Virus record (IMG/VR): IMGVR_UViG_3300044796_000662
Location: 124,001 to 188,000 of that record
Reading direction: 5' to 3' (one strand)
DNA: 64,000 nucleotides
The notes beneath the pieces are model-generated. The model was not told where the DNA came from. It did not search any database and saw nothing but the letters and a program-made list of their open reading frames with translations. The position numbers were made by a program, and so were the translations under genes. This document shows, piece after piece, positions 22,801-64,000 of the stretch (positions are counted from its first letter, which is position 1; each line of letters starts with the position of its first letter).

Positions 22801-23332
22801 GAGTCGTAGAGGCGTAGAAGTTGAACCCCTGGAACGTCGTGCTCGGCGGTACCACCAGCGTTGCTGGGTTCGAGACGAGCGACGACGGGTTCGTGATCGT
22901 TGCGGTGTTTGAGACCAGGTTCGGCTGGATGGCCTGGATGTTGACGGAGCCGTTCGCGCGCACCACGCGCACGCCCGTGGGGATGAGCGTGGACACGTCG
23001 TTGACCGTGAGCACGTACGTCACGGTCGCCGTAGAGGTTGCGCTCACGGCACCGAGGATGTCGATCGCTCGGATGGCGATGGTGTTGACGCCAAGGGCGA
23101 GCGCGAGACCCGAGGGGTAGGAGTTCGGGTTCGGGATCGTGAAGGTCTGCTGGTCGAACAGGATGAGCGTGGGGTCGGACGAAAACGCCGACCCGTTCAC
23201 GGAGATCTGAAGCGCCACGGTATCGACCGTGACTGTTCCCGTGATCACGATCGCGCTCTCGTTCGTGGAGAACACGAGCGACGTGGTGTATCCGAGTCCG
23301 TTTCTGAGTGCGATTTGGGGAGCGGTTGCCAT
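19847..23332 (-). CDS. Baseplate J-like wedge protein (T4 gp6-like), 1161 aa with insertions
   Basis: PGSTSRDVSIDPFA, ATQAGADGN...I, GTDVETNEDLAARA, GGKVDIWVQG. Confidence 0.85.
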   Translation of the reverse strand: MATAPQIALRNGLGYTTSLVFSTNESAIVITGTVTVDTVALQISVNGSAFSSDPTLILFDQQTFTIPNPNSYPSGLALALGVNTIAIRAIDILGAVSATSTATVTYVLTVNDVSTLIPTGVRVVRANGSVNIQAIQPNLVSNTATITNPSSLVSNPATLVVPPSTTFQGFNFYASTTPGGATGYFLVNQSPVTTPTVYEEDDVSSAQDIATWDNTTLKNIRIQVTETDNFGNLLNVRFDKSYPAGALGPKLRYSSNLQSYQFNNFISFTHTRSGGTGIINSDQFANVSNSDPLYYVVTAVFFDSVLNQEVETPYSQEVLGTPLTIDTAILDLPGRTAAQITTDYITAIQRVNASVALIPGSTSRDVSIDPFASEAERLWFLLDFIHRSQSFLTLIQIDDTTGNGMPDAVASSPYKSALKAAIGATTDDQTQSLIDTQYDKLAANVDKTRLPGAPAVGQVVIYTPTRPLLDIVIPAGTIVTASADSSQNLPAWPFLIAGSYTLPAENSQAYYNFSTQRYEIVADIVATQAGADGNRSAGTITSISGVAGVSVVNESSTVFGTDVETNEDLAARAMLGFQAVDTGTQGGYALTAASQIGIIKALVVKSGDPLMMRDYDPVRHKHIGGKVDIWVQGVNERNITETFAFTYQLALNIPVEIINISTLVFQVLDSRVTPSTPITEILSGPGQGVFNVTQGIAYDLTGATILSYNTFQLNAALPDQPTTHIDDVIEVDYRFQSVNTFTFSYQPVRRIVSVVGEIAGPLDLTHNIIFDQSDDPLITGQSTIATDNLTLVQYNGIPSGSPIQVNNETHVIIGFFQVPLSNVGINTDTIAVYSADRTIEYNGPSSPTPDYDIIQGTPTTPALIIRTATSTIVSGQTVSVDYTHDENFTVTYVINDLLQQLQEVVNTKRHVTADVLVKQAIDNNVNIETTVQLKAGASQSTVDAEIRSAVSIVLNTKLIGQGVAQSNVDGAINDQSGVSFNVLPFATMGYADGSIKLREAVNSAFESVASLDIGGNNAFILTAALENPTTDNGGLPTQTHGVFQDDVQLTNAASLAQVCLAANQGWIIGSEGASILGYSDDATLIAQGFTTPAAILAQRLLLTANHVVVSLSNAGSPADVPTNHVYTVTYIVSGQTGAHDITAAQVEYITLGNFNITYASA

Positions 23333-25229: not shown

Positions 25230-26009
25230 CTAACTCCTCGCGTGACGGGTCAGGTACTCAGCAGCTCGTAGAAGAAGGTCAGGGACGTCCTTGAAAAACC
25301 CCAAGCCTCTGTTGCAATGGGCGCACAAGAGGGATCGCATTTTGCCGGTGCGGTGGTCGTGATCGGCATGAACAGAATTTGGGTTTTTCCCGGTCTTGGA
25401 CATCGGGGTGCGACAGATGGCGCAGCACCCTTCCTGCGCCTGCCACATCTGCTCGAACTGCCCAGACGACCATCCAGAACGGCGACGCCTCTCAGCGTCA
25501 AGCCGTTCCTTTCGGTACACTTCGTCGTTTTGGTACTTGGCCCCGTTCACCTCTGACGTACAACTTCGGCAGACGGAAGTACGACAGCCCTCCCCGTAAA
25601 AGGCCCCACGGGGCAGATCGTTTCTACAGACCGAGCAAACCTTAGTCGGCTTGGAGGGTTTGGGGGTCCGACCAGAGGGACGTCTTGCAATACCCTGTCG
25701 CAGCAAGACATTCCGAATGGTGCCAACCGATAGCTTGTGATGTGTTGCGAGGGTCTCCAGAGACAAACCCCTTTGGTACCCTTCTGCAATAGCCAGAGCG
25801 GTCTCTGAACTGACCTTCGATCCCACTGGTCGCGTTAGACGACCATGCACCTCTTCGGCGCTGAGAGGGTAGTCCCTCAACCAAACGCTCAAGGATGCGG
25901 TGGAGACACCCGTGCATCTTGAAATGTCTGCAAGAGACAGGCGTTCTTCCAGACGTAGCCGGAGAGCTTCCGCCTTCTCCTCGGACGTTCTACGGACCCC
26001 TCTGGGCAT
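25230..26009 (-). CDS. Free-standing Endonuclease VII-type HNH homing endonuclease with two HTH-like domains
   Basis: QEGCCAICR...VHADHDHRTGKMRSLLCAHCNRGLGFFKD is the Endo VII signature; CxxC...CxxC zinc finger; N-terminal HTH-like segments; visibly lower GC than flanks. Confidence 0.9.
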   Translation of the reverse strand: MPRGVRRTSEEKAEALRLRLEERLSLADISRCTGVSTASLSVWLRDYPLSAEEVHGRLTRPVGSKVSSETALAIAEGYQRGLSLETLATHHKLSVGTIRNVLLRQGIARRPSGRTPKPSKPTKVCSVCRNDLPRGAFYGEGCRTSVCRSCTSEVNGAKYQNDEVYRKERLDAERRRRSGWSSGQFEQMWQAQEGCCAICRTPMSKTGKNPNSVHADHDHRTGKMRSLLCAHCNRGLGFFKDVPDLLLRAAEYLTRHARS

Positions 26010-40744: not shown

Positions 40745-42598
40745 CTAGGTCTGGGTTGAGAGCGTGAGGCCGCCGGGACCAACTTCGTCGATGGTGGCGT
40801 TGTAGATAGGCACGGGAGCCGCAGGCTGCGGGATGACAGGAGAAGAGTTCGGGACCGTCGTCGATTGATTGGTAGGCGTCGTCGGCGGTTGCTGGACCGT
40901 GAAGCCCCCTTGAGGAATGCCATAGGTGAAGTTGGGGTCCGCCACCTGATCGAAGACGAAGGTCGCACGAGCCGTGAAGGAGAAGCTGTACTCCAACGAG
41001 TAAGGTTCCGTGTCGGTCTCGGTGATCGTGAAGTTGTCGAACGACCCCACGTACAGCGTGTAGTCGAAGTAGATGTAGATGGAGCCCAGGACCGAGAGGT
41101 TGCTCTTCGAGAAGTCGATGGGGTCGGGCACGTAGATGCCCGCATTGTTGCGGTAGATCTGGTAGAGCGACACGAGGTTCTGGAACGACAGCGAATACTG
41201 CCGTGCCGTCCTCGTGAGGCCAGGACCCATCGAATCGGTAGTCGTGTCGATCGCTTGGAAAGCAGCGATCTTGCCCGAGCCCTCGATCTTGTCCTGGTTG
41301 TCACCCCAGTGCTCGACGATGTCTTGCGGGCCGAAGCGGGTCCAGTTACCGTCCGCAATGACCTTCTCGTTGTTGACCTTGAACGACCTCGGGTTGACGA
41401 GGAGTTGCAGAGGCGGCGTCTGCGCCATCTGCGTAATGAGTTGCTGCGAGGCCAAGGCAGACGCTCGCTGCGCCTGTGCGTAGTTCTGCGCGACCTGGTT
41501 CTGCGAGTTCTGGAGGTCCGTGTTTTGGGACGTAGAGATCTGCGAGGCTGCCTGCGCGCTAGCTCCTGACCCGGTAGCAACCCAATCTGTCGAGACGTTC
41601 GTGGTGATCGTACCCGCAGGGCTGAACGTGAGCGGCGCGGGGAGCTGACTCGTGTCCAGGGACCCAAGCTGGCCCACGAGAGTGTTTGGGTCGTGGAACC
41701 CTTGGAGGTACCCGCCCACGCTGACGCCCATGTACGAGTATTGGCCAGCGCTCTTCAGGGCGTTCACGTAGCCCTGCGTGTCCCCCGCCGCTGCCGCCTG
41801 GAAGGCCGCTTGGCCGCCCGTTCCCTGGATGGCGTTGAGGAACGCGGTCGCGCCCCCCACCGCCGTGCTGTACGACGTGTAGTAGGAGACCGGGCCTTCG
41901 CCCTGCGTCCCCGGGCAGTTCACGTACCCGAAAGTGTTGTGGTTGGCGATGGCCTTCGCGCCCCAGGACGTCGAGGGGTTGAAGTTGCCGATGTACCCAG
42001 GGTTGTTGTTGGGCCACTGGACCGTCGTGCCGCTCGGAGAGCCGGTCTCACGCATCGAGTGGGCACAGAGCGTTGCAAGAGTCAGTGCTGAAGGCGGGCT
42101 TCCGAACTTCTGCGTGTAGGCGGTGTTGAGGGCGGCCGCAAGCTGTTGCAAGCTCAACGTCTGAACGATGGGCGGTCCCTGGTTCGATCCCGGATCACCG
42201 TCCACGTTCTGCCCGTGGCAGCCTCCGAAGGCCCCCGCCGGTCCCTGACTCGAACTGACGGTGGAAGCACTGCCGCTCGCTGGCTGCGGTTGCGCCTGAG
42301 GGGCGGTCCCCAGAGTAGGCTGCTTGGGCGTGCGGTCCAACGTGCGCCCGGTAGGGAGCGACGAAGGCGGGATGAGCCCGATGACGAAGAGCTTCTTGCT
42401 CTGGTCAGGGTTGTTCATCGCGTCGGAAACGGGGATGAACTGCGCTCCCATCGCATCCGGTTGCAGGATGAGCGACTGGCTGAGCTGCGACAGAAGCGAG
42501 TAGTAGAGCGACGGCGAGTAGTAGTTCGCGTTCTGCGCGATCTGTTGGTAGATCGACGTGTTCGACGGGTTCGTGTTGTTGTTGCCGTTGTCCGCCAT
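40745..42598 (-). CDS. Tube-initiator (gp48/gp54-like) protein with an N-terminal GH73/FlgJ-like peptidoglycan hydrolase domain
   Basis: C-terminal LQLLVNPRSF...VEHWGD...YIYFD....GSF..F...E; N-terminal AHSMRETG...NNPG...Y.SY....G...YVNALKSAGQY. Confidence 0.65.
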   Translation of the reverse strand: MADNGNNNTNPSNTSIYQQIAQNANYYSPSLYYSLLSQLSQSLILQPDAMGAQFIPVSDAMNNPDQSKKLFVIGLIPPSSLPTGRTLDRTPKQPTLGTAPQAQPQPASGSASTVSSSQGPAGAFGGCHGQNVDGDPGSNQGPPIVQTLSLQQLAAALNTAYTQKFGSPPSALTLATLCAHSMRETGSPSGTTVQWPNNNPGYIGNFNPSTSWGAKAIANHNTFGYVNCPGTQGEGPVSYYTSYSTAVGGATAFLNAIQGTGGQAAFQAAAAGDTQGYVNALKSAGQYSYMGVSVGGYLQGFHDPNTLVGQLGSLDTSQLPAPLTFSPAGTITTNVSTDWVATGSGASAQAASQISTSQNTDLQNSQNQVAQNYAQAQRASALASQQLITQMAQTPPLQLLVNPRSFKVNNEKVIADGNWTRFGPQDIVEHWGDNQDKIEGSGKIAAFQAIDTTTDSMGPGLTRTARQYSLSFQNLVSLYQIYRNNAGIYVPDPIDFSKSNLSVLGSIYIYFDYTLYVGSFDNFTITETDTEPYSLEYSFSFTARATFVFDQVADPNFTYGIPQGGFTVQQPPTTPTNQSTTVPNSSPVIPQPAAPVPIYNATIDEVGPGGLTLSTQT

Positions 42599-52496: not shown

Positions 52497-52931
52497 TTAC
52501 ACCGGCTCGGCTTCGGGCTCCGGCTTCTTCGCGTGCCAGTCGATGAACCGACCCGCCTCGATGGCGTCCTCGTGCTCGTCGAACAGCTCCATGTACTTCT
52601 CGATGCGGTCCCGCACGCCGTCACGCCAGTTCTGCGTGCGCTTGACCTTGAGGATCATGTCCCTGGGCATGAGCGGCCGGTTCTTCGAGAAGTCGTACAT
52701 GATCATCTGGATGATGTCGGCGCCGCTCTTGCGGGTCTGCGCCCCCTCGGTCGGAACCGTCGTACGGATGCGGATACCGACCTTCGGCGTCAGAAAGAGG
52801 TCGTAGGTCACCTCTCCCATCGAACTGCCCTGCTTGGGGTGGAGCGCGTGGAAGGCGCGCTTGAGGAAGGTATCCCACTCCTCAAGCGAAGCCTCCGTGT
52901 ACGTCGCCCCTGCCATGCCCTCTCGCTTCAT
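52497..52931 (-). CDS. Conserved-looking phage hypothetical protein, 144 aa
   Basis: Start placed at the ATGA overlap with helicase stop (52928-52931) rather than 53150; IRTTV...R..GADII...KVKRTQNW. Confidence 0.7.
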   Translation of the reverse strand: MKREGMAGATYTEASLEEWDTFLKRAFHALHPKQGSSMGEVTYDLFLTPKVGIRIRTTVPTEGAQTRKSGADIIQMIMYDFSKNRPLMPRDMILKVKRTQNWRDGVRDRIEKYMELFDEHEDAIEAGRFIDWHAKKPEPEAEPV

Positions 52932-55900
52932 GACGGCCTCCGGTCGTATGCGGACACCGCTGGGAAGTCCTCCGGGGTCCTCGGGTCGATCGTGTCCGAC
53001 TCGAAGAAGCTGGCGAGCACGGTGGTTGCGTCCGGCGGCTCGGGGGTCGGGTCGTTCTTGCCGGGGACGTTCTGTCCCTTCTTGAGCCCTGCCTCCGAGA
53101 CGAAGACGCTCGGTCCAGCATCTCGCCCGTAAGCGCTCTTGGCCGGGCACACGATGGTCAGGTTTTTCGCTGCGCGGGTCATCGCAACGTAGGCGAGCTG
53201 GCGCTCTGTCTTGAACTCCTCGGCCCGCTCCTTGGCCAGGCGCTCTTGCGCCTCGGGCGGGAGAAGCTCCTCACCCGGCTTCGGCCTCGGCTCGTACGGG
53301 AAGACACCCCTGGCCATGACCACAGAGGTGTTGTTCCACTGCGCGCCCTTGACCGAGTGCACGGTGGAGAGGGTCACGCAGGGCGGCGCCTTGCGCTCGT
53401 TCGGGGGGAGCTTCTGCTGCTCCGCATCCCACTGGTCGAGATCGATGCGCAGATCCTTCGAGGCGGCCACGAGCTTGTCGATGCGCGCCTTGAACTTCTT
53501 GGGATCGCTCGGGTCCGTGTCCAGGTTCGCTGGATCCGGCTGCGCGATCTGGAAGAGGAAGACCACGTTGCCGATCGGCTTCTTCGACGGGTCATCATCC
53601 GGATCGGGCGGCGAGTCGCTCTCTTCCTCGTGTCCCCCAAATACGGGCATGAGCACGTCGCGCAGGGTCGGAGCAGGAGCATCCCTGCGTTCGGGCACAC
53701 CCTTGACGTTGAGGATGTCGCCGAAGAGGTCTTGTGTCGTGTAAGGCTTGTTCTCGCCGGTCAGCCTGTCGTAGATCTTGCCGACCTCTACGGACTCCCG
53801 CATCCCACGAAGAGCGCGGCCGAGGTTCTCCAGCTCCTCACCCGTAGCCCGAACCTTCCAGTTCTCCCAGCGGCGGGCCGGGTCCATCGCGTCCATGAAC
53901 GCGTTGATACCGGGACGGTCGAAGAGATCGAGCGGGTTGACGTTCTTCGAAGAGGTGCCGAGCTGGCGCGCCCTCTTTTCGACGACCTCGTTAACGATGC
54001 GCTCCGACTCCCCCGCCTTGAGGTAGAACCTGTTCGGCTTGTTCAAGACCTCGATGAGCGACTTCTGCATGCGCTCGAAATCCTGACCCGCTGCCAGGTT
54101 GAAGTAGCTCATCACGGTCACGGTCTCGGGGGACCGGAGGAAGCTCGTGCCGCCCTTGCGTGCGTACGGGATGCCCTGGATGATGCAGGCCGTCTCGAAG
54201 TCGTTCTGCTCCATGTTGGTACGGGTCAGAACGGCGTAGTCTTCCAGCGGAGCGCCGGCGTCCACGTCCTGCTTGATCTGCGAGACGACGCTCAGAGCGC
54301 CCGCTGCATGGGTCGGCGGCTCTTGAACGACGATCGAAGACTGCCCCCGCGGCTTGGACGCATCCGGCACCGCCTCCATGGGGACGCCACGGGGGTGGTT
54401 GGTCATGAGCTGGTTGGCGTGATCGACGATCTCGGGCAAGCAGCGATAGTTCGTGCGGATGGTCTTGGTCTTCCACCCGGGCTTGCCGTGGAACTGCGTG
54501 AGCAGCTCCGGACGAGCGCCCACGAAGCGGTTGACGCTCTGCACTTCGTCGCCCACGAGCCATACGGACTTGCCGTCCGAACCGTCGCCAATGTGCTCGG
54601 ACATCATGGCGATGATCTGGTGCTGCACCGTGTTGAGGTCTTGGGCCTCATCGACCAGGATGTGATCGAACATGGCCTGAACGCGCTTGCGCACGATGGG
54701 GTCTCGCTTGAGCACGTCGCGGAACATGATGATCATGTCCGAGAAGTCGCCAAGACGAGCCTTGCCGTTATCGCGCCACTTCGCGAGGAACTCTCCCCAC
54801 TGCTTCATCGCCTTGGGGCTGGTGTCCTTGCAGGGCGGGCTCCAGGTCTTGTCGATGCCCTTGAAGCCGTTGAGCCAGGCGTACCACTCGGCCTGGTCCT
54901 TCTCTTCTTCCGTTCCGGCCATCGCCTTCGCTTGCGCGGGAGTGATGTCGTTCATCATCCAGGACTGGACGACATTCTTCGCCCGCCCCGGCGGATCCTG
55001 GTCCCGGCATTCCTTCCAGATGCGGGCCATGTACCCGCCGAAGGCTCCCGGGGAAGGTGCCCGGCCTGAACGCTGGTCCTGGTCGCCCGCCTTCTTCGAG
55101 GGCGTAGTCATGAGCCACGTGGTGAGCGCGGCCTTCTCCTCAGGCGTGCCGTTCTCGACGACGAACTTGCGGAACATGCCGTGCATCGTCCCGACGTTCA
55201 TCTGCTTGAGCGCGTCGTCGCCGACCTGCGCTCCGATGCGCTCCCGAAGCTCGCGGGCGGCCTTGCGGTTGAAGCTCACGACGAAGATACGAGCCGGGTT
55301 GACCTTGCGGTCCTTGACCAGGTAAGCCGCACGAGCCGTGACCGTGGTGGTCTTGCCCGAACCGGCGCCGGCCATGATGACGACGCGGCCGTCTGTCAGA
55401 GCGGCATCGAGCTGCTCGGGGTCCAGGCGGGCCAGAGACTCGGGGACGGCCCCGGCCTTCGAGGCGGCTGCGGCCGCTGTGGCGATGCCGATGACCTCGG
55501 ACTTGGTAGGCGGAGCGTCCGCCTCCCCGCTCACATCAAGAGCCCGCTTGGCAGCCTCCTGAGCGTCCTTCTGGATGACTGTCAATCGGTCTGCATGGTC
55601 CTTGGTCGCAACGTGTGCCTCTTCACTGAGGACGGGGCCTGCCACCCTCTTGGCGTTGTCGAGGGTCAAGGCATGGGTGTCGTCGAGCGTGGCCGTTGCA
55701 GCGGCATCCACGGCGTTCTGAACATCGCCAGCGCCCGCGACCTTCGCCGCGAGGTCAATCCATGCGCGCACCCGCGCGTTGCGGATCGAGACCGTGGCGA
55801 TTTGACCCATCGCCGAAGCGCCATCGTCGTACGTGGACGCCTGCATGACCAAGTTCACCTCGCGACGTGCGCGGGCGGACTCGAAGACCTTGCGGATGGT

Positions 55901-56278
55901 GGCCGTACCCCCAAGAGAGAGCACGTTGCGGAGCTGGAGGGCCTGACGAGGCAGGCCAGCGCGGCTCGTGGCAAACCGGAACGCCTTGGCCAGCATCTTC
56001 TTGCGCGTCTCGTTGGGCATGTGCCCGGTCAGAAACGCATGGTACGCGTCGCCGTGCTGCGAGTTGGCCTGCTGAAGAAGCCTCAGGCCCCGCTTGAGAA
56101 CGGGGTCCATGGGGTCGTGAAGACCCGTCTTCTCCTTCAGGAACCGGAAGTACGTGTCATAGGCGAAGACGAAGACCACCCATTCGGCGACTTCGAGATC
56201 TCCCACATCCTCGACCGGATCAGAGTGCCCGGTCGGAACTGGCTCAGCGGCGGTGCGACGGTCGTAGCTCATCACCAT
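52928..56278 (-). CDS. uvrD: UvrD/Rep/PcrA-family SF1A DNA helicase with ~285-aa N-terminal extension
   Basis: LDPEQ (Q), AGAGSGKT (I), SFNRKAA (Ia), LVDEAQD (II), VGDEVQS (III), NYR (IV), TVHSVKG (V), ERQLAYVAMTRA (VI). Confidence 0.95.
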   Translation of the reverse strand: MVMSYDRRTAAEPVPTGHSDPVEDVGDLEVAEWVVFVFAYDTYFRFLKEKTGLHDPMDPVLKRGLRLLQQANSQHGDAYHAFLTGHMPNETRKKMLAKAFRFATSRAGLPRQALQLRNVLSLGGTATIRKVFESARARREVNLVMQASTYDDGASAMGQIATVSIRNARVRAWIDLAAKVAGAGDVQNAVDAAATATLDDTHALTLDNAKRVAGPVLSEEAHVATKDHADRLTVIQKDAQEAAKRALDVSGEADAPPTKSEVIGIATAAAAASKAGAVPESLARLDPEQLDAALTDGRVVIMAGAGSGKTTTVTARAAYLVKDRKVNPARIFVVSFNRKAARELRERIGAQVGDDALKQMNVGTMHGMFRKFVVENGTPEEKAALTTWLMTTPSKKAGDQDQRSGRAPSPGAFGGYMARIWKECRDQDPPGRAKNVVQSWMMNDITPAQAKAMAGTEEEKDQAEWYAWLNGFKGIDKTWSPPCKDTSPKAMKQWGEFLAKWRDNGKARLGDFSDMIIMFRDVLKRDPIVRKRVQAMFDHILVDEAQDLNTVQHQIIAMMSEHIGDGSDGKSVWLVGDEVQSVNRFVGARPELLTQFHGKPGWKTKTIRTNYRCLPEIVDHANQLMTNHPRGVPMEAVPDASKPRGQSSIVVQEPPTHAAGALSVVSQIKQDVDAGAPLEDYAVLTRTNMEQNDFETACIIQGIPYARKGGTSFLRSPETVTVMSYFNLAAGQDFERMQKSLIEVLNKPNRFYLKAGESERIVNEVVEKRARQLGTSSKNVNPLDLFDRPGINAFMDAMDPARRWENWKVRATGEELENLGRALRGMRESVEVGKIYDRLTGENKPYTTQDLFGDILNVKGVPERRDAPAPTLRDVLMPVFGGHEEESDSPPDPDDDPSKKPIGNVVFLFQIAQPDPANLDTDPSDPKKFKARIDKLVAASKDLRIDLDQWDAEQQKLPPNERKAPPCVTLSTVHSVKGAQWNNTSVVMARGVFPYEPRPKPGEELLPPEAQERLAKERAEEFKTERQLAYVAMTRAAKNLTIVCPAKSAYGRDAGPSVFVSEAGLKKGQNVPGKNDPTPEPPDATTVLASFFESDTIDPRTPEDFPAVSAYDRRPS

Positions 56279-56372: not shown

Positions 56373-59300
56373 TCAGAGGCTCGCGCGGAGGTTGAACGTC
56401 AGCACGAGGTAGAGGAGGGGGAAGATCGGCTGGTAGTAGGCCGAGAAGTCGAGCGTCGTGGGGTCGTTCGGATCGACCACTGCGCTCACGCCCGTGTACG
56501 CGCCGATGATCTGCGCCTCGATGAGGCCCTTGAGAAGGGCGGTCATCGAAACCGTGACCTCGTTGGTACGCGAGAGCAGGTACTTCGTGCCGACGAACGA
56601 GTCCAGGATGACTCGGCTCTGCTGCTGCACGAAGTCGCTGATCTGCGTCACCGTGGGGAGACGCGTCAGGATCGTGCTCATGTTCGTCGTCAGAGCAGCG
56701 CGGATGCGGATGAGCGGTTGCAGCTCTTCGAGCACCGTGATGCCTGCGACGGCGGTCTGGTTGGCCGTGACAGGGTCGAGCACCCGGGGGATGCTCGTGA
56801 AGCCCTGGAGGCGGCGACGGTCGTAGGGGGTCGCGACGTCCACCGCAGGCGAGCACCCCGCGCCGGCAACTGCCGCCGCGTAGAAGGTACCGTCCACGAT
56901 CGAGTCGTAGCTTGCGCCCGTCTCGTCCGTCAGGGTGATGTCGGAGCTGTCGGGGTAGAACGCGACGATGCGGTTTGAGAGCAAGCTCCGAACGACCGTC
57001 TGAGCGTTCGTCGGCGACGTGCCCGAAGCGAACCCGATGAAGCCCATCCGCTCCGACTGGTTGCGGATGTTGGATTCCACTTCACAGTGCTGCGTCAGGT
57101 AGGCGTAGACTGCCGTGCTGGTCGCGAGCGGGACGAGGATGTCCGGCTTCACGTTGCCAGGCAGCGGGGTCGCGAGGTTCTGGATGGCCGTGATGAAGCT
57201 CGCGTCCGACGCCTGGTTCGTGTTCGGCACCGCGAGCACCTGGCTGATACCCACGAGCACCGCGCCGTTGAGGATGGCGAGGTACGCCGCGAGGCTGACC
57301 CGGTTTTGCGGGGCCACGACGCCGAAGTTGGCGTTGATGGTCGCTTGCTGCTGGAAGAGCCGGACCGTGAAGTCCTGCTTCATGTACTGGTAGGACACGA
57401 AGTAGAAGTCGCCGACTGCCGGAGCGGTGCCGCTCGGGTTGAAGGTCGTGATCGTGCCCGTGTCGTTCGTTCCGACGCCCACGGTGTTGGAGACGGTGGT
57501 CTCCAGACCCGGGATGGCGTAGGTCGGAATGGCCGAGGTCACGTTGAACGTCTGCGAGACGAGCAGCGTGAAGCTTCCGGATCCCCCGTAGCTGCCGATG
57601 GCGGACGGCAGCACCGTGAAGCGCAGGCCCGTCTTCGCATCGACGTACGTCTGACCAGGGTAGCCAGTTCCGCTCGAACCCGAGGAGTTCGAAGACGTGA
57701 CCACGAAGTTGTCGATCGGGTTCTCGCCGTCATCCCCATCCGTGCCCGGCACGAGACCGATGTTGGTGCTCGTGTTGAACGCGGAGTTCGAGGAGGTGAC
57801 GAAGCCGATGCTCGAACCTGCCGCGCCGACCGTCAACGACTCGAACGTGATGTAGTTCAGGCTGTTGATCTGATCGACGTAGGCAATGGCCGCCGACTTG
57901 AAGCCGGAGGTCGCCATGAGTTCGTCCACGATCTCGTAGGCGAAGACCTGGACCTGGCTTGCCGAGGCGTTCTGCGTGAAGCCGAGTGGCGTGTTCGCCG
58001 TTCCCGTGCCGATGATGATCGACGAGTTGGCGTTGTTGGTCGGGCTCGTGAGGCGGAGCTTGCCCGAGTTTGCGAGAGTACCAACCGAGGCGACACCAGA
58101 GAGACCCGGGGTCGTGTTGATCGCGGTCACGATGGCCGACGTAGCGACCGACGTCCCGTTGGGGATGGTGATCGTGTACTGGTTGCCGTTGACCGAGATG
58201 ATGAGCTGGTCGTTGACCCCCAACGTGATGTTGTAGGGGCCTGCGATGCTGCTCAGGAGGGTTGCCGGCTTGTTGATCGCGCCGGTCGTGCCCTTACCCG
58301 TCGAGAAGGTCTGGAACCCGAGGGTCGAGGTGACAGTACCCTGGTTGATCTCGACTGCCGAGGGGCTGTCGAAACCGCCAGGCAGCGCGCCCGGAACCGA
58401 GTAGCTGTAGATGTAGAACAGTACGTCGCCCGTGCTCGGCCCGATCTGGGAGAAGTTGGCGAGGTTGTTCGGTGCCGTTCCGGAGAACGCAGCGTTGAGG
58501 TCGATGACCTCGTTGATCGAGGCCACGATGGCTGCCGGGCTGTAGTAGCCCCCAGCCGCCGAGCCGAAGACCGCCGTGGTCGAGGGGTTGGTCGTACCCG
58601 TGTAAGCCGTCGTGAGCGTGATGTTGCCGCTCGTGACCGCCTGGACCACGTAGTACGTGCCCGCCTGCGAAGCGAACGTGATGACGTTGCCCGGGAAGAC
58701 GAGCCCGACTTGCGAGGTCGAAGTCGTGACCGTGGCGCTTGCCGTCACATCGAAGGTACCCGTGAGGGCTCCCGTGGGCAGCGTGACCGAGAGGGCCGTG
58801 CCGTCGATGGTCAGGTTGAGGACGTTGTTCGGAGCGGCCGGGATCTGGATGAACCCAGAGTCGCCACCCGACTGGACCGGCGTGACGTGCCCGCCGACCA
58901 CGACACCGCGCTCTGCGGCAGCGAGGTTGGTCGTCACGTTGCTGCCGTTGACTTCCGTGACCCACGTCGCCGAGGACGGCGTGAAGATCGAGTACGGCTC
59001 AGCGTTGCGGTTCGTGAAGCTCGCGTTGTTGGCGGCCGCCGTACCGAACGTCACCGTCACGGTCTCGGGGACCGGCGTTCCGGCGCCCGTCATGAAGGCG
59101 TCGGGGATGCTCTGAACGCCACGCGGCCAGATGACCTGTTGGCTGAGACCAGACGTCGTGCCGAACCGGATCTGCCAGGCGTTCTGGTTCTGGTTCGAGT
59201 CGAGGATCTGGTACGTACCCGCCCCGTACGCCCCAGGGGTCGTGCAGGTCAGGATGAACGTGTCATCCGTAATCCGGTTGTACCAGAAGGTGGCCCAAGC

Positions 59301-60872
59301 CTGGAAGTCGGGCGGGACCGGGTTGGCCAGCGTGACGAGACGCTGAAGTCCGTCCACCGCCGTCACCGTGACCGGGCCACGGTTGACTGCATCACGGAAC
59401 GAGCGACCCACGTAGACCTGAACGAGGTCCGGGCGGTTCGTCACGAGGTCTTGGCGCGCGTTCGTGACCGAGTTGAAGAGCGGCAGGCCAAGGGGCGTGT
59501 CGCGGCCGTTGCCGGTCGTCGGGATTTCCGGCAGCGTGAACTGGTTGGTCGAAACCGTCGCCGGGATCGTCGTGGTGTTCACAACGCGCGTGCACGGGGC
59601 CAGCCAGAGCTTGTCGTCCACGAGAAGGGCGCTGACGAGCGTGTTGTCGAACGGCTGCGCACCAGTCGAGGTCGAACCTGCTGCGATGACGAAGCTCGTC
59701 CCCCAGAGGATGACCGAGACCGACTTCGAAGGGTTGGAGACGATGAAGTCCACACCCTGCACGTAGTCGTTGCGGCCTGGCGAGATGCCGCACGCGACCA
59801 CGTTGGTCACGAGGGAGTTCGGCAGGTAGTCGAACGTGTTCTGCCAGGTGTTGGCCGAGTATTGAACCGTGACCGTGGTCCCCGCTGCCGGAGCGTAGGG
59901 GAGCGTCACGACACCGTTCGTACCGTCGAGGCTCGTCGGGATGACCTGGACGTTGTTGACGAGAACGACCACCTTCGAGGTGTCCGTCGTCGTCACGCCG
60001 CCGCCCGTGCCGTCCGTGACCGGGATGTTGAAGACCCGGAACGCCTGGTTGCGGACCGTCTTCGCACCGGCCGAGAAGCCGAGGATGCCGTTGGCCGTGC
60101 CCGAACCGATGATGAGGTTCTGGGTCGTCGTGAACTGCACGTGGTTCAGACCCGCGTTGTCGGTGAAGACCGACGCCACGAGGTTGGTCACCGCGGCTGC
60201 GTTGATCGCAGAAGCGAAACCCGCCGCCGTGTAGCTCTGTGCCCCGAGCGAGATCGTCGAGGTGACGCCGTTGACCGAGACAGCGAACTGGTCGCTCTGG
60301 CCACCGACCACCACGTACGGCTCGAACGCCGGCGCAACGAGGGTTGCGAGGCTGTTGCTCACCTGGGCCGAGACGTCGTCCTTGAAGGACGTGTCGCCAC
60401 GGTGGAAGTAGTAGGTGACGTTGACCTGGTCGGTCGGCTGCGTCGGCACCTGGAGGGTGATGAGACCCTGCGAACCGTTGACCGCTGCGAGAGCAACCGG
60501 CGTCCCGTTGACCGTAACGGTCACAGCGCTCGTGTTGTTCGAGACCGTCCCGGTCCCTTGACCGTTGGTGATCGGGAAGTTCGCCACCTTGAAGGTGACA
60601 AGGGTTCCCGTCTGGAGGCCGAGGATGAGGTTCTGGGGGTTCGTCGCGTTGACGACCCACTCCTCAGTGACGTCCTCGTTGACGATCTGTTCGTCGGCCG
60701 AGCCGGACGAACCGCGCACGATCTCGACGTTGTCGTTCTCCAGCACTTGCTGGCCGACCCCGATAATGACAGGGATCCTTAGACCCGCCGTCAGGTTCGA
60801 GACGTTGGCTTCAGTCAGCGTCCGCGTGTAAACGCCGGGCGGGACGTAGGAAATGAACGGGCCGAGTGCCAT
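56373..60872 (-). CDS. Contractile tail sheath protein, 1499 aa, with many inserted surface domains
   Basis: N-terminal YVPPGVYT, C-terminal ERMGFIG...YAAAVAG...AGITVLE...YYQPIFPLLYLVLTF; GAGGAG RBS. Confidence 0.95.
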   Translation of the reverse strand: MALGPFISYVPPGVYTRTLTEANVSNLTAGLRIPVIIGVGQQVLENDNVEIVRGSSGSADEQIVNEDVTEEWVVNATNPQNLILGLQTGTLVTFKVANFPITNGQGTGTVSNNTSAVTVTVNGTPVALAAVNGSQGLITLQVPTQPTDQVNVTYYFHRGDTSFKDDVSAQVSNSLATLVAPAFEPYVVVGGQSDQFAVSVNGVTSTISLGAQSYTAAGFASAINAAAVTNLVASVFTDNAGLNHVQFTTTQNLIIGSGTANGILGFSAGAKTVRNQAFRVFNIPVTDGTGGGVTTTDTSKVVVLVNNVQVIPTSLDGTNGVVTLPYAPAAGTTVTVQYSANTWQNTFDYLPNSLVTNVVACGISPGRNDYVQGVDFIVSNPSKSVSVILWGTSFVIAAGSTSTGAQPFDNTLVSALLVDDKLWLAPCTRVVNTTTIPATVSTNQFTLPEIPTTGNGRDTPLGLPLFNSVTNARQDLVTNRPDLVQVYVGRSFRDAVNRGPVTVTAVDGLQRLVTLANPVPPDFQAWATFWYNRITDDTFILTCTTPGAYGAGTYQILDSNQNQNAWQIRFGTTSGLSQQVIWPRGVQSIPDAFMTGAGTPVPETVTVTFGTAAANNASFTNRNAEPYSIFTPSSATWVTEVNGSNVTTNLAAAERGVVVGGHVTPVQSGGDSGFIQIPAAPNNVLNLTIDGTALSVTLPTGALTGTFDVTASATVTTSTSQVGLVFPGNVITFASQAGTYYVVQAVTSGNITLTTAYTGTTNPSTTAVFGSAAGGYYSPAAIVASINEVIDLNAAFSGTAPNNLANFSQIGPSTGDVLFYIYSYSVPGALPGGFDSPSAVEINQGTVTSTLGFQTFSTGKGTTGAINKPATLLSSIAGPYNITLGVNDQLIISVNGNQYTITIPNGTSVATSAIVTAINTTPGLSGVASVGTLANSGKLRLTSPTNNANSSIIIGTGTANTPLGFTQNASASQVQVFAYEIVDELMATSGFKSAAIAYVDQINSLNYITFESLTVGAAGSSIGFVTSSNSAFNTSTNIGLVPGTDGDDGENPIDNFVVTSSNSSGSSGTGYPGQTYVDAKTGLRFTVLPSAIGSYGGSGSFTLLVSQTFNVTSAIPTYAIPGLETTVSNTVGVGTNDTGTITTFNPSGTAPAVGDFYFVSYQYMKQDFTVRLFQQQATINANFGVVAPQNRVSLAAYLAILNGAVLVGISQVLAVPNTNQASDASFITAIQNLATPLPGNVKPDILVPLATSTAVYAYLTQHCEVESNIRNQSERMGFIGFASGTSPTNAQTVVRSLLSNRIVAFYPDSSDITLTDETGASYDSIVDGTFYAAAVAGAGCSPAVDVATPYDRRRLQGFTSIPRVLDPVTANQTAVAGITVLEELQPLIRIRAALTTNMSTILTRLPTVTQISDFVQQQSRVILDSFVGTKYLLSRTNEVTVSMTALLKGLIEAQIIGAYTGVSAVVDPNDPTTLDFSAYYQPIFPLLYLVLTFNLRASL

Positions 60873-61024: not shown

Positions 61025-61037
61025 ACAAGAGAACTAG
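61025..61037 (-). promoter_or_regulatory. Candidate phage promoter CTAGTTCTCTTGT upstream of sheath
   Basis: AT-rich motif at the start of the 161-nt sheath leader; near-identical to 51147..51160. Confidence 0.45.
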
Positions 61038-61480
61038 CGATGCTCGCCGCCGGGTCCCCTCTGTGCCCTGACCGAGTCGATGGCGACCTTGGCGAGATTG
61101 CGCCTCGCTGTACGTCCGCCGTCGCTCATAGGCTCATAATCAATGTAATCGCGGTTGTTGTGGCGGATCAGGGCATGGGTTCCACCCTGTTTACGGGCTT
61201 CGGCCTTGACCTTCTCCCGTTCGTGGATCTCCGCCCAGCGGACTTCCGCATCCCGCCCGACAAGCTTGTCCGCCGTAGGATAGTCGTTGTCGTGGACGCC
61301 CGTGTTCGCCGTAGCGCCCGTCTGGGAGCCCTTGAAGGCGAAAGCCAGTGAGTCCGCGTCCCACACTCGCGGTGCATCGCGCCCGCACGAGGGGCACTCG
61401 TGCGTCAGGTGCTCTGCCATCTTGAGGGTGCGGAGGAACTCGACGTTGCAGTCCTCGCACGCGAACGTGTACATGGGCAT
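61034..61480 (-). CDS. FmdB-family zinc-ribbon protein
   Basis: MPMYTFACEDC...ECPSCG matches MPxYxyxCxxC...CPxCG. Confidence 0.85.
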   Translation of the reverse strand: MPMYTFACEDCNVEFLRTLKMAEHLTHECPSCGRDAPRVWDADSLAFAFKGSQTGATANTGVHDNDYPTADKLVGRDAEVRWAEIHEREKVKAEARKQGGTHALIRHNNRDYIDYEPMSDGGRTARRNLAKVAIDSVRAQRGPGGEHR

Positions 61481-61496
61481 GGGATCCTCATTTGGG

Positions 61497-62690
61497 TCAG
61501 CGGATGCGCTCGAAGTCGTTGTTGCGCCCGTTGAAGATGGGCAAGGAGGGGTAGATCAGGGGGCTTGCGCCGCTGGCGAGGGGGGCGACCTGGTCTGACG
61601 GCGTATTGGGGTCGGCCGGCTGACCGGCTGCGTTTGTCTGCCTGACACGACTGATCGTGAAGGGCATCGGCGCGTGCACTTCCCAGTCCGCGCGCAACTG
61701 GAGCGACAACGAGGCCGAGTACATGTAGATGTCGCCCGTCTCATCCATGGGCTCTTCGCTCTCACCGCCCATGGAGAGGTCCACGATCTCGATGCCCTCG
61801 TTCTCCAGGTACGGCTTCTTGTCCGCCCAGAGGTACATCATCGCGAGGTCGGAGATCTCTTCCATCTGGATCGGGTCTTGAGCCACGGCTTCCAGTTCGA
61901 AGCTGACCTCCCACTTGCCACCGTACGCCCGCGCCACATCCACACGGTCCGGGTAGACCACGACCGCGCACTTGTCCCCAACGCGGGCACGCTTGCCGAA
62001 CGCCATGACCACACCGGGCAGTGTCTTGAAGTCCGAGACGTTCCAAAAGAACGGGATCGGACCAAGGGACGGGACCGAGTAGCGGTACTCCGCCATGACC
62101 CTCGCCCCGGGCTTGAAGCGGGTCTTGAAGACAATCGCTCCGGTCGAGTAGTTGACAACGTAGTCAGTACCCTCCGTGAGCAGCCAGTTGCCGTTCTCGT
62201 AGATCCGGAGCGTGCCCTTCGAAGGAGGGTTCTGAAGCTGACCCTCAGTCTCGATGCCGGTCTGAAAGAAGAGCAGAGGTTCTTGGGGGACCGTGATGAG
62301 GGGGTCAATCGTGTACATGCCAGGCTCGGAGGCGTTCTTGGGCACGGACAAGATCTCGATGTAGTAGACCCCAGGCAGGATCGGCATCTGCTCTTGGTTG
62401 TTCGCGAGGACAGCCTGATCCTCGCGAACCCACTCGATAGGATGCGCGGGCGTACCAAAGTAGAAGAGACCCACGTGGCTCTCGACCGTCCCCATGAAGT
62501 TGTCGCCAGCTAGGGAGATCTTGTTGGCACTCGATCCCTTGACGATGATCCCGTACTGCGGACGCTCGTTGAAGCTGTACTTGTTCTGGATGTACGGAAC
62601 GATCTTGCTGTAGATGGGGTGGCGCGAGAACGAGTCTTTCAACTCGTTGATGATGCGCCGCTTGAGAGCCCCAATGATGTAGTAGTACAC
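61497..62690 (-). CDS. Tail terminator / completion protein (gp15/gpU-like) with inserted Ig-like module
   Basis: Position upstream of sheath; WEVSFELEAVAQD...EEISDLAMMYL...YSASLSLQL beta-alpha-beta pattern. Confidence 0.55.
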   Translation of the reverse strand: MYYYIIGALKRRIINELKDSFSRHPIYSKIVPYIQNKYSFNERPQYGIIVKGSSANKISLAGDNFMGTVESHVGLFYFGTPAHPIEWVREDQAVLANNQEQMPILPGVYYIEILSVPKNASEPGMYTIDPLITVPQEPLLFFQTGIETEGQLQNPPSKGTLRIYENGNWLLTEGTDYVVNYSTGAIVFKTRFKPGARVMAEYRYSVPSLGPIPFFWNVSDFKTLPGVVMAFGKRARVGDKCAVVVYPDRVDVARAYGGKWEVSFELEAVAQDPIQMEEISDLAMMYLWADKKPYLENEGIEIVDLSMGGESEEPMDETGDIYMYSASLSLQLRADWEVHAPMPFTISRVRQTNAAGQPADPNTPSDQVAPLASGASPLIYPSLPIFNGRNNDFERIR

Positions 62691-62697
62691 GTGGGCC

Positions 62698-63711
62698 TCA
62701 GGCGTGTTCCTCCATCGCCAGGACCAGGAGGCCCTCTGCGACAGCGGTCATGGGGTCCTTCGCCATCCGGATCTCGCTGATCTCGATGGGGAAGCCCTTC
62801 TTCTTGATCTCGGAGAACTCCGACTTGAAGACCTCCTCGAAACCGATGGCCTTGCACGTGCCGCCGGAAACGACGAACGGGATCGGCCCTGGCAGCTCAA
62901 TGCTCGACTGCGCCTTGCGGAACTGGATGGCGATGTTCTCCAGGCAATGGCGGATGAGCGCGCGGATGTAGAGAGAGATCGCTTCGGCGTCCCGATCATC
63001 ATCCTTGTGGTTGATGAGGTCCACGCCCTTCTCCTTGATGGTGCACATGCGCGAGGCCGTAGACCCGGTCGCCTTGGCTGCGTGGGAGTCGATCCAGTCG
63101 CCGCCACGTGCAAGAGAAAACTCCAGACCCTTGATGGTCTGATAGGAGAGCGCCACGTTGCACATGCCCGAACCGAATGACACGGACAGGCCCGAGAATG
63201 TCTCGTCGGCGCACTGGCTGTAGATGATCGCCATCGCCTCGTTCATCGGGTGCGCCGTGAACCCGTGCTCGGTGATGATCTTGCGGAAGATCTCCGTGTG
63301 GTAGACGACGTCCTGGTCCGGCATGTCCACGGGCGCCGCGGGGACGCTGTAGAAGCAGTGCTCGTCCTTGCAAGACGGCTCTTCGAGTACACTCTTGACG
63401 AGGAGACTCAGGATCTGCTGCGCCTTGAGTTCCCCGGCCGCGATGACGCCGTTGCTCAGGGGACGACGCACTTCCCTCTTGAAGAGGTTGGCCATCGTCA
63501 GAGCTGAATCGCCGATGACGACGAGCTGGCCGTCGCCCATCTCGATGTAATCGACCTTCGAGAGCCGGAGCTGCTTCTTGGCCTCCGATTCGAGGTCGAT
63601 GAATGCGTCGCGGATGCGGTTGGTCGAGACCTTGTCGCCGACCTGGCGTGCCGAGACGATGTTCATGGTCCCAATGTCGAGACCAATGCCCTTCCTCTTG
63701 TCCGTGCTCAT
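62698..63711 (-). CDS. Actin-family (ASKHA) ATPase, volactin/MamK-like
   Basis: GLDIGT (phosphate 1), MNEAMA (connect 1), SFGSGMCN (phosphate 2), GGDWID, VVSGGT (adenosine), DPMTAVAEG (connect 2); 337 aa. Confidence 0.9.
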   Translation of the reverse strand: MSTDKRKGIGLDIGTMNIVSARQVGDKVSTNRIRDAFIDLESEAKKQLRLSKVDYIEMGDGQLVVIGDSALTMANLFKREVRRPLSNGVIAAGELKAQQILSLLVKSVLEEPSCKDEHCFYSVPAAPVDMPDQDVVYHTEIFRKIITEHGFTAHPMNEAMAIIYSQCADETFSGLSVSFGSGMCNVALSYQTIKGLEFSLARGGDWIDSHAAKATGSTASRMCTIKEKGVDLINHKDDDRDAEAISLYIRALIRHCLENIAIQFRKAQSSIELPGPIPFVVSGGTCKAIGFEEVFKSEFSEIKKKGFPIEISEIRMAKDPMTAVAEGLLVLAMEEHA

Positions 63712-63754: not shown

Positions 63755-63997
63755 TCATTTGATCTTCCAGTCGGAAGCAGTCTTCACGCTCTTCGAAGCA
63801 ACCCGGCCGCCCGCACGCTGCTTGAGCAGGTACACGAACGACTCGTTCACGTCAGCGATGCCCTGGAGAAGGTTGTCAATGCCGTGCGAGAGCATCCCCT
63901 TCTTTTCCAACAGCTCGTAGCCGATACGCAGAAGCACGAGGAACCGGAGCACACCCTTGAGCGAGATGAGAACGCACTGCTCGGGCGCGGCCTGCAT
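63755..63997 (-). CDS. Small hypothetical protein, 80 aa (frame open to the window edge)
   Basis: GC3-rich codons; preceded by CCT as in other TGA-CCT-ATG junctions; could extend beyond 64000. Confidence 0.6.
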   Translation of the reverse strand: MQAAPEQCVLISLKGVLRFLVLLRIGYELLEKKGMLSHGIDNLLQGIADVNESFVYLLKQRAGGRVASKSVKTASDWKIK

Positions 63998-64000
63998 AGG

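Follow-up and report, generated by a model that had tools for sequence, protein, structure and literature searches.

A volactin-family actin homolog encoded beside neck- and tail-like genes in a large group of huge phages

Actin-like gene in a predicted virion-structural region

The locus considered here raises the question of whether a group of very large bacterial viruses encodes an actin cytoskeleton. The analysed window is a 64,000-nucleotide stretch of the IMG/VR virus record IMGVR_UViG_3300044796_000662 (positions 124,001 to 188,000). A sequence-only reading had noticed in it a complete 337-aa protein with five ASKHA motifs, 7 nt upstream of a tail-terminator gene, and had regarded it as a volactin-like actin. 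This observation was confirmed. An intact ATG-to-stop ORF of 337 aa occupies positions 62698-63711 on the minus strand, a strand that had not been stated before, and the next gene downstream (61497-62690, minus strand, GTG start) begins 7 nt after the actin stop. The proposed interpretation was only partly supported, as discussed below.

All five actin-fold motifs are present and conserved across 111 homologs. They are phosphate-1 GLDIGTMNIVSA, connect-1 NEAMAIIY, phosphate-2 SFGSGMCN, adenosine VSGGT and connect-2 DPMTAVAEGL. The unusual phosphate-2 motif, which has S...N where MamK has D...D, is real and family-wide, and residues S178 and N185 are at least 90% conserved. Residues D12, G14, G180, G182, D208, K226, G283, G284 and G327 are invariant, and E158 is near-invariant. 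Besides, inteins are inserted at three or more sites in the catalytic loops of homologs.

Family assignment and predicted fold

The protein is a full-length member of the Pfam family PF25216 (Volactin), with a score of 251.1 bits against a cutoff of 35 bits, E=2.5e-74 and a match to profile positions 3-321 of 321. For calibration, haloarchaeal copies score 453 bits and other lineages 223-301 bits, while E. coli MreB gives no hit. A total of 2179 homologs was found, and the low dN/dS given below likewise shows that the match is not due to chance. The motifs that had been put forward as typical of haloarchaeal volactin match those of chromosomal Halobacteriales homologs, which contain GIDIGTMNIVSA, RRPMxxG, NEGMAVIY, SFGAGMTN and ARGGDWID. 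The family signature GxDxGTMN, RRP(L/M)xxG, NE(A/G)MA, SFGxGMxN, ARGGDWID and GGT is conserved in the phage clade, in Halobacteriales and in the rest of the family. The identity to a chromosomal Halobacteriales homolog is 38% over the full length. The characterised relative, volactin (VolA, HVO_2015) of Haloferax volcanii, is of the same size, about 335 aa, and forms dynamic filaments in vivo (PMC10869688). Filament formation and a disk-shape role are shown only for that protein, which is encoded by a chromosomal cell-shape gene and not by a core gene of a neck/tail block.

The AlphaFold2 model is very confident (pLDDT 96.3, pTM 0.93) and represents an actin (ASKHA) fold with four subdomains. 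The Foldseek top hits in the PDB are Mbl/MreB, MamK (TM 0.72/0.74), the BeeR filament (TM 0.70), FtsA and actin, with a probability of 1.00 to MamK, MreB and actin, and no Hsp70 or sugar kinase was found in the top 50. A single-sequence search of the PDB gave nothing at E<=1, and PHROGs gave no family for the actin. Only a profile built from 111 sequences reached solved relatives, namely MamK (3.6e-15), BeeR (8r2n, 1e-9), FtsA (7e-7) and MreB (1e-6), versus EutJ (4e-4) and DnaK (0.5). MamK (PDB 5JYG, 5LJV, 5LJW) is thus the closest solved structure by profile and by fold, and the catalytic Glu of connect-1 aligns. However, its identity is only about 18%, its phosphate-2 loop is the canonical D-I-G-A-G-T-T-D, and no magnetosome genes are present in the window. 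BeeR, a distant bacterial cellular protein forming a three-stranded tube, is the second-best PDB family by profile. The Pfam MreB_Mbl model (PF06723) scores 15 bits against a cutoff of 27 bits, and the identity to MreB is about 15-18%.

The placement of the protein in a non-polymerising ASKHA family, or the absence of linkage to phage structural genes, had been named as grounds for rejecting the sequence-only reading, and neither was found. Nevertheless, it is possible that the protein is a non-polymerising actin-fold ATPase acting as an assembly chaperone, or a nucleotide-dependent assembly factor, for the neck, terminator or sheath, in an Hsp70-NBD-like or EutJ-like role. The 7-nt coupling to the terminator-like gene, the embedding among structural genes and the non-canonical phosphate-2 loop are compatible with this. 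The BFVD database of viral structures holds no close relative; the best match is Bacillus phage G gp506 at TM about 0.5, and the rest are mostly viral Hsp70 homologs, but these matches are weak (TM 0.5-0.6, 11-15% identity). Such a role seems unlikely, since the closest solved relatives are filament formers, the fold model covers all 337 residues, leaving no substrate-binding or lid domain, there is no Pfam HSP70 hit, and the characterised family member polymerises in vivo.

Neighbouring genes

The 397-aa product of the gene following the actin (61497-62690) is neck/tail-terminator-like, and the two genes are probably co-transcribed and translationally coupled. Its ESM Atlas neighbours include the SP10_terminator, Phage_tail_terminator_9 and T4 gp15 families. 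Its AlphaFold2 model (pLDDT 72.8) matches the phage 812 neck chain (E=2.4e-6) and the E217 gateway protein with a Foldseek probability of 1.00, lambda gpU with a probability of 0.96, and the A-1(L) gp7 terminator, but the global TM scores are only 0.15-0.36 and no Pfam or PHROG terminator hit was obtained, so that support for this assignment is moderate. The next gene (61034-61480, minus strand) encodes a 148-aa Zn-ribbon (FmdB-like) protein (PF09723 Zn_ribbon_8, E=1.6e-9), which keeps its position between the terminator-like and sheath-like genes in nearly all loci.

The gene at 56373-60872 (minus strand) encodes a giant 1499-aa tail-sheath-like protein, whose conserved sheath-like core is the C-terminal ~450 aa. 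The Atlas neighbours of residues 1040-1499 are Phage_sheath_1, Phage_sheath_1C, DUF2586 and DUF3383 clusters (scores 0.90-0.93). The window copy itself has no Pfam sheath hit, and among 25 orthologs, six hit Phage_sheath_1C and two hit Phage_sheath_1, only weakly (best E about 3e-4). A profile of the sheath core found in the PDB only a non-significant DUF4815 chain (E=0.11), and a profile of the conserved 454-aa upstream protein found nothing there. A UvrD-like helicase (52928-56278, minus strand; PF00580, E=4e-45, and PF13361) is encoded downstream of the sheath-like gene.

Upstream of the actin, at a distance of 43 nt, lies the 3' end of a Dps/ferritin-like gene (63755-64000, minus strand), which runs off the window and encodes 259 aa in full, as seen at 9178-9957 of the sequence designated L001. 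It matches phrog_3636, a 'DNA binding protein' (E=2.5e-9), and gives weak DUF5856/Ferritin hits. The gene is syntenic in most of the closer loci.

The proximity of this gene and of the UvrD helicase suggests another possibility, a phage-genome positioning or segregation actin like ParM of plasmid R1 or AlpC of the Corynebacterium prophage CGP3, whose filaments would push or position replicating or episomal phage DNA through a DNA-binding adaptor. Known phage and plasmid actins do this (AlpC: PMC4446434), the haloarchaeal relative salactin aids DNA partitioning, and the dynamics of volactin were likened to those of ParM (PMC10869688). However, ParM and AlpC systems come with an adaptor gene and a DNA target and act on DNA replication or segregation, whereas no centromere-like repeat arrays were found in or near the locus, no intergenic arrays lie within about 10 kb, and the only repeats are coding repeats in a distant giant gene. 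No ParR/AlpA-like adaptor is recognisable. There is no Pfam ParM/StbA hit, and ParM is absent from the top 60 PDB profile hits at E<=10. The Dps-like neighbour is not detected in the more divergent syntenic loci, which still keep the actin, and the conserved partners are structural genes. A ParMRC-like module was therefore rejected, and a segregation role is considered unlikely.

Phage origin, synteny and selection

The window also encodes a baseplate J-like protein (19847-23332, minus strand; PF04865, E=1.5e-13), indicating a contractile-tailed phage, and an Endo VII protein, with nearly all large genes on one strand. Relatives of the actin were found in 126 IMG/VR loci at 51-100% identity, many of them on contigs of 200-512 kb, and the gene's own contig reaches 570 kb. 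The order of actin, terminator-like protein, Zn ribbon and sheath-like protein, in a block that begins with a virion structural protein and the Dps-like protein, recurs in about 80 IMG/VR loci, with the Dps-like gene in most of the closer ones, and the GenBank uncultured huge phage LR745208 has the same synteny. In the reverse test, all 69 of 69 terminator-anchored loci had the actin directly upstream, with a median gap of 19 nt. Sister lineages at about 45-50% identity, among them L182 and L183, keep the order of structural protein, actin, terminator, Zn ribbon and sheath, with other genes between actin and terminator. In L182, the 346-aa gene directly after the actin is not a terminator homolog (E=0.43), and the true homolog lies three genes further on.

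The dN/dS of the actin gene against the closest relative is 0.057, the lowest of 7 neighbouring genes; comparisons beyond this relative are saturated (dS above 1 or undefined) and were used only for ranking dN. Actin identity is also higher than that of its neighbours in most of the syntenic loci.

Three syntenic contigs are filed in bacterial MAGs, and the Pfam name points to archaea, which might suggest a cellular gene on a misclassified contig or a recent passenger from a haloarchaeon. This is very unlikely and already largely refuted. The MAG contigs carry the full phage synteny, IMG/VR and GenBank file relatives as phage, and conservation across hundreds of contigs excludes a recent passenger.

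Phylogeny and likely host

The sequence-only reading had also considered an archaeal-type actin in a phage of a peptidoglycan-walled host to be a cross-domain surprise. The GH73 domain, and therefore a likely peptidoglycan-walled host, is supported. The 617-aa protein encoded at 40745-42598 (minus strand) contains a GH73/glucosaminidase-like domain (residues ~130-320); it has no Pfam hit at E<=0.01, but 90 of the 100 nearest Atlas clusters are PF01832 Glucosaminidase (score 0.95, structural TM 0.70). A scan for sigma-70 promoters found none and no tRNAs were found, so neither gave a clue to the host.

The archaeal-type, cross-domain interpretation is not supported. The phylogenetic analysis placed Halobacteriales volactins in one small, separate tip cluster (support 100*), well separated from the phage clade, within a broad family of 1041 clusters at 50% identity. 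That family also includes bacterial chromosomal genes, a CPR gas-vesicle-cluster gene and several independent jumbo-phage lineages. Rooting with E. coli MreB and FtsA gave branches of 7-8 substitutions per site, and no conclusion on the root or the direction of transfer is drawn from this tree. The phage protein is not halophile-acidic (pI 5.6 against 4.1 for haloarchaeal copies). A haloarchaeal virus was rejected on the basis of composition and the GH73 domain. The genomic context of two further homologs, P0228 and P0205, lay on contigs of 1-4 kb and told little.

Possible role of the phage actin

In the most likely reading, which as a whole, with its inferred parts, has a probability of about 0.5, the ORF encodes a functional ATP-binding actin-fold protein of the volactin family, vertically inherited as a core gene of a large clade of huge (about 200-570 kb) contractile-tailed phages, whose hosts are probably peptidoglycan-walled, non-halophilic bacteria. 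The analysis itself demonstrates the family membership, the predicted actin fold with intact nucleotide-binding motifs, the filament-forming nature of the closest solved relatives, the strict synteny inside a virion-structural block and the strongest purifying selection in that block. The remainder is inferred from sequence and predicted structure alone, in a clade with no known cultured member. Like its haloarchaeal relative, MamK and MreB, the protein would polymerise with ATP into filaments in the infected cell. Being packed 7 nt from the terminator-like gene with no terminator-like signal in between, it would be made together with the neck and tail proteins late in infection, and would then act as a cytomotive or scaffolding filament that organises where or how the very large virions or their tails are assembled or positioned.

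Several facts counsel caution. The phosphate-2 loop lacks both acidic residues of the canonical DxGxGxxD motif, and the chemistry or kinetics of ATP hydrolysis may therefore differ, although this is family-wide and includes filament-forming volactin. Gene position is only weak evidence for timing and role, as the block also contains the Dps-like and UvrD genes and is not purely structural. Other jumbo-phage lineages carry family members in non-structural contexts, with NrdD/RecA or ClpP/M15 peptidase genes. The terminator and sheath assignments rest on moderate or weak evidence.

The sequence-only reading had proposed positioning of assembly, movement of capsids or tails, or reshaping of the host, and these roles too remain inferences. 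In the last case, the phage actin would co-polymerise with or displace the host MreB/FtsA-type cytoskeleton to change cell shape, size or division and make room for huge virions. The founding member of the family controls cell shape (PMC10869688), a bacterial chromosomal member sits next to SPOR and amidase cell-wall genes, and the fold resembles MreB/Mbl and FtsA. This is doubtful, however, because the low identity to MreB and the sub-threshold Pfam score make co-polymerisation unlikely, no membrane-targeting helix is evident at either terminus on inspection of the sequence, and takeover genes are usually early and poorly conserved, whereas this gene is the best conserved in a late-type block.

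Phage-encoded cytoskeletons are so far known mainly from the PhuZ tubulin of nucleus-forming jumbo phages (Chimalliviridae), plus a few DNA-segregating actins and tubulins. Literature searches for actin homologs in huge, jumbo or mega-phages found nothing relevant among the papers that could be searched. PhuZ, conserved across a jumbo-phage lineage, is the functional analogy proposed here for positioning and trafficking during assembly, although it has a different, tubulin/FtsZ fold with no homology to the actin, and its function has been shown experimentally. It can be tentatively suggested that a widespread clade of huge phages builds its own actin cytoskeleton, which would be a second, independently evolved phage cytoskeleton alongside the PhuZ spindle. 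It is further possible that the volactin family as a whole is largely a phage-borne actin family, from which cellular lineages (Halobacteriales, CPR, some bacteria) took their copies.

The gene described here differs from the earlier examples in being an actin homolog that is a strictly conserved core gene of a large, environmentally widespread huge-phage clade, comprising hundreds of IMG/VR contigs and at least one published 485-kb genome, in being the slowest-evolving gene of its neighbourhood, and in being physically coupled to the neck and tail genes. This makes a clear, testable hypothesis for how phages with genomes of 0.2-0.57 Mb and giant tails organise assembly, and the protein, which is small, confidently modelled and available in many natural variants, is suitable for in-vitro polymerisation and cryo-EM. 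The result also changes the view of the volactin family, which has no solved structure and only one characterised member. The Pfam name reflects that first characterised member and not the range of the family, which is not a haloarchaeal speciality but a broad family of bacterial, CPR, archaeal and phage actins.

Identification of the actin-like gene

The interval 62698-63711 of the window contains an intact ATG-to-stop ORF of 337 aa located on the minus strand, while the plus-strand translation of the same interval is full of stops. The next gene downstream on the minus strand (61497-62690, 397 aa, GTG start) begins 7 nt after the actin stop, and the conservation of its N-terminus, MYYY..., in orthologs indicates that the start is right. 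The five actin-fold motifs are present. In an alignment of 111 sequences, residues D12, G14, G180, G182, D208, K226, G283, G284 and G327 are invariant, and E158, S178 and N185 are at least 90% conserved. The phosphate-2 loop S-F-G-S-G-M-C-N aligns with D-I-G-A-G-T-T-D of MamK, so both acidic residues are replaced throughout the family. The observation made in the sequence-only reading was thus confirmed.

The Pfam search gave one significant family, PF25216 Volactin (E=2.5e-74, 251 bits with a cutoff of 35, profile positions 3-321 of 321), whereas MreB_Mbl was below threshold, at 15 of 27 bits. For calibration, a chromosomal Halobacteriales homolog scored 453 bits, other lineages scored 223-301 bits, and E. 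coli MreB did not hit the model. The window protein is 38% identical over its full length to that haloarchaeal protein. The motifs named in the sequence-only reading as the volactin pattern are exactly those shared with Halobacteriales, namely GIDIGTMNIVSA, RRPMxxG, NEGMAVIY, SFGAGMTN and ARGGDWID.

The AlphaFold2 model, built with the alignment, has a pLDDT of 96.3 and a pTM of 0.93. As was found by the Foldseek search, the top matches of this model in the PDB are Mbl/MreB, MamK (TM 0.72/0.74), the BeeR filament, FtsA and eukaryotic actin, and no Hsp70 or sugar kinase appears in the top 50. A profile search of PDB sequences ranked MamK first (3.6e-15), followed by BeeR (8R2N, 1e-9), FtsA (7e-7) and MreB (1e-6), with EutJ (4e-4), PilM (0.04) and DnaK (0.5) far behind. 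No member of the family has a solved structure. Placement of the best hits in non-polymerising ASKHA families had been set beforehand as grounds for rejecting the sequence-only reading, and the best hits do not fall there. A non-polymerising assembly ATPase nevertheless remains a rival reading of the protein.

General features of the element and the probable host

The GC content of the window is 0.61-0.64, and nearly all large ORFs lie on the minus strand. The window has few Pfam hits, which include Baseplate_J, Endonuclease VII with HTH domains and a UvrD helicase. The Endonuclease VII fused to several HTH domains (25230-26009, minus strand) and the 1116-aa UvrD-like helicase (52928-56278, minus strand) are interspersed among the tail and baseplate genes, so the “structural” region is not purely structural. 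The actin is recorded on contigs of up to 569,965 bp. IMG/VR contains 126 loci at 51-100% identity, many of them on contigs of 200-512 kb, and two GenBank “uncultured phage” genomes encode homologs, LR745208 (485 kb, 52% identity) and LR756511 (595 kb, 28% identity).

The proteome is not halophile-acidic. The actin has a pI of 5.6, with D+E of 13.9% and K+R of 11.6%, while haloarchaeal copies have a pI of 4.1, with D+E of 18% and K+R of 6%. The 617-aa protein encoded at 40745-42598 has a GH73/glucosaminidase-like domain, as judged by its language-model and structural neighbours (0.95, TM 0.70), although this domain is missed by Pfam. It is therefore likely that the host is a peptidoglycan-walled, non-halophilic bacterium.

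Neighbouring genes

The 397-aa protein encoded immediately downstream of the actin has Atlas neighbours in tail-terminator families (SP10_terminator, Phage_tail_terminator_9 and T4 gp15), and its AF2 model (pLDDT 72.8) matches the phage 812 neck chain (E=2.4e-6), the E217 gateway protein, λ gpU and the A-1(L) gp7 terminator. The support for its designation as a neck/tail terminator is moderate. Support is also moderate for the designation of the 1499-aa protein (56373-60872, minus strand) as a sheath. Its C-terminal ~450 aa have sheath families as Atlas neighbours, and its orthologs show weak hits to Phage_sheath_1C (6/25) and Phage_sheath_1 (2/25). This putative sheath protein is exceptionally large (1400-1640 aa in orthologs), and only the C-terminal ~450 aa resemble sheath cores, leaving the N-terminal part of ~1000 aa unexplained. 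For the Zn-ribbon protein encoded between these two (PF09723), only the domain assignment is clear. No terminator-like signal separates the actin gene from the terminator-like gene.

On the other side of the actin, 43 nt upstream, there is a gene for a Dps/ferritin-like “DNA binding protein” (phrog_3636, DUF5856), with weak to moderate support. It occupies 63755-64000 on the minus strand of the window and extends beyond the window end; the full gene, encoding 259 aa, was seen in the fetched locus L001 (9178-9957). It is syntenic in the closer relatives but was not detected in the divergent ones. The orthologs of a 454-aa protein encoded further upstream hit PHROG 1004 “virion structural protein” (19/25), which gives moderate support. 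The Dps-like neighbour is compatible with a rival reading, a role of the actin in DNA positioning similar to that of ParM or AlpC, but neither centromere-like repeats nor an adaptor were found. Tandem coding repeats of 93 nt (31 aa), in 2.5 and 5.5 copies, are present at L001 positions 888-1117 and 2522-3031, inside a giant ORF of 2759 aa upstream of the window end that has no Pfam or PHROG hit.

Synteny and conservation

The tblastn search with 15 neighbouring proteins against all fetched loci showed the same gene order in essentially all IMG/VR loci: the 454-aa structural protein, then, after an interval, the Dps-like protein, the actin, the terminator-like protein, the Zn ribbon and the sheath-like protein. 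LR745208 has the same order. It was also found in three short contigs filed under bacterial MAGs labelled Actinomycetota, Methylobacter and Legionellales (L084, L085 and L086), which are therefore phage contigs, mis-binned or at best providing weak hints about the host. The possibility that the actin is a mis-classified cellular gene is essentially excluded.

In a reverse search anchored on the terminator-like protein, 346 IMG/VR matches were obtained, of which the best 80 were fetched. Every one of the 69 loci with enough upstream sequence has the actin directly upstream, with a median gap of 19 nt. Two sister lineages whose actins are about 45-50% identical (loci L182 and L183) retain the structural protein (E=2e-88), the actin, the terminator homolog (E=6e-55, located three inserted genes later), the Zn ribbon and the sheath homolog (E=5e-105).

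The actin is more conserved than its neighbours in most of the syntenic loci. In comparison with the closest relative (locus L005), its dN/dS is 0.057, which is the lowest of seven genes (range 0.057-0.22). Many homologs of about 700 aa, including the representatives P0122, P0124, P0130 and about 15 others, are interrupted by inteins at three or more distinct sites: between SFG and SGM within the phosphate-2 loop, after GMTN, and after LAR just before the GGDW motif. The junctions are classical, with C...HN followed by C or S. This is typical of indispensable, highly conserved phage proteins. The window copy is intein-free.

Diversity of the volactin family

An exhaustive search of 1.84 billion cluster representatives found 1041 clusters at E<=1e-3 and 308 at E<=1e-30. 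Many family members (representatives P0125, P0148-P0151, P0154, P0155, P0180 and others) are fused to long N-terminal (150-580 aa) or C-terminal (up to 1160 aa) extensions of unknown nature. The phylogenetic analysis of 111 members plus E. coli MreB and FtsA placed the synteny-defined phage sequences on one side of a branch (support 86), with a core of 23 sequences (support 98), whereas Halobacteriales form a tight, separate cluster (support 100). The outgroup branches are too long for the root or the direction of transfer to be inferred from this tree.

Other members of the family were found in very different genomic contexts. A bacterial chromosomal member (in the region L103, 7147-11056) lies directly downstream of SPOR-domain and Amidase_2 genes, which hints at a cell-wall or division-linked role for cellular bacterial “volactins”. 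In a Minisyncoccales (CPR) MAG (L102, 10001-11044; GCA_049642725.1, JBARPC010000005.1), a volactin-family gene is located inside a gas-vesicle gene cluster comprising three GvpA-like genes, GvpH, a GvpN-like AAA, a CDC48-like AAA, three GvpL/F genes, GvpG, GvpO, GvpK and ArsA. This suggests a link between the actin and gas vesicles and, unexpectedly, the presence of a gvp cluster in a CPR bacterium. Further members are found next to ClpP and an M15 peptidase on a jumbo-phage-like contig (L101), on a 330-kb contig with a weak T4-gp13-like hit (Phage_T4_gp13), NrdD and RecA genes (P0163), and on a 263-kb “Clostridium” contig of phage-like make-up (L090). The actin ORFs of two contigs with a GC content of 0.23, filed under Clostridia and Peribacteria MAGs (L095, 2810-3859, and L096, 2898-3947), contain 21 in-frame TAG codons and end in TAA, so it seems that a TAG-recoded phage-like lineage with an alternative genetic code also carries the family. 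The second published huge phage, LR756511.1 (L105, 10001-10996), encodes a distant member (PF25216 at 223 bits) without the terminator/sheath synteny. The haloarchaeal locus itself is ordinary chromosome, with rhomboid and alcohol dehydrogenase genes nearby.

Thus, “volactin-like” is correct as a family label, but “archaeal-type” is not, and no cross-domain transfer into this phage needs to be invoked. The interpretation offered in the sequence-only reading is therefore supported in part: the family and the genomic context hold, the cross-domain claim does not, and the proposed function is a matter of inference.

Comparison with described phage actins and possible function

The paper describing volactin and the papers citing it do not mention phages. 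No mention of any actin homolog was found in the huge-phage paper that mentions PhuZ (PMC7162821), in a comparative-genomics overview of 224 jumbo phages (PMC7824862), in two 2026 reviews (PMC13359090 and PMC13282480) or in several clade descriptions, and targeted literature searches returned nothing relevant. The only phage actin found is AlpC of prophage CGP3 (PMC4446434), which belongs to a different family and context. Within the limits of the literature that could be searched, the association is undescribed. Phage-encoded cytoskeletal homologs are already known as such, and what is new here is the branch of the volactin family and the context in which it occurs.

The results of the present analysis demonstrate a conserved and selected gene for a predicted nucleotide-binding actin fold, whose closest relatives are polymerising actins, and which is a core gene tightly coupled to the neck/tail-like genes. 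The remaining part of the interpretation is inferred. The formation of ATP-dependent filaments is suggested by analogy with volactin, which forms dynamic filaments spanning the cytoplasm (PMC10869688), and with MamK and MreB, and late expression together with the tail genes is likewise an inference. Takeover of the host cell shape is a further rival to this view. In the view preferred here, the actin-like protein would participate in organising the assembly or positioning of very large virions.
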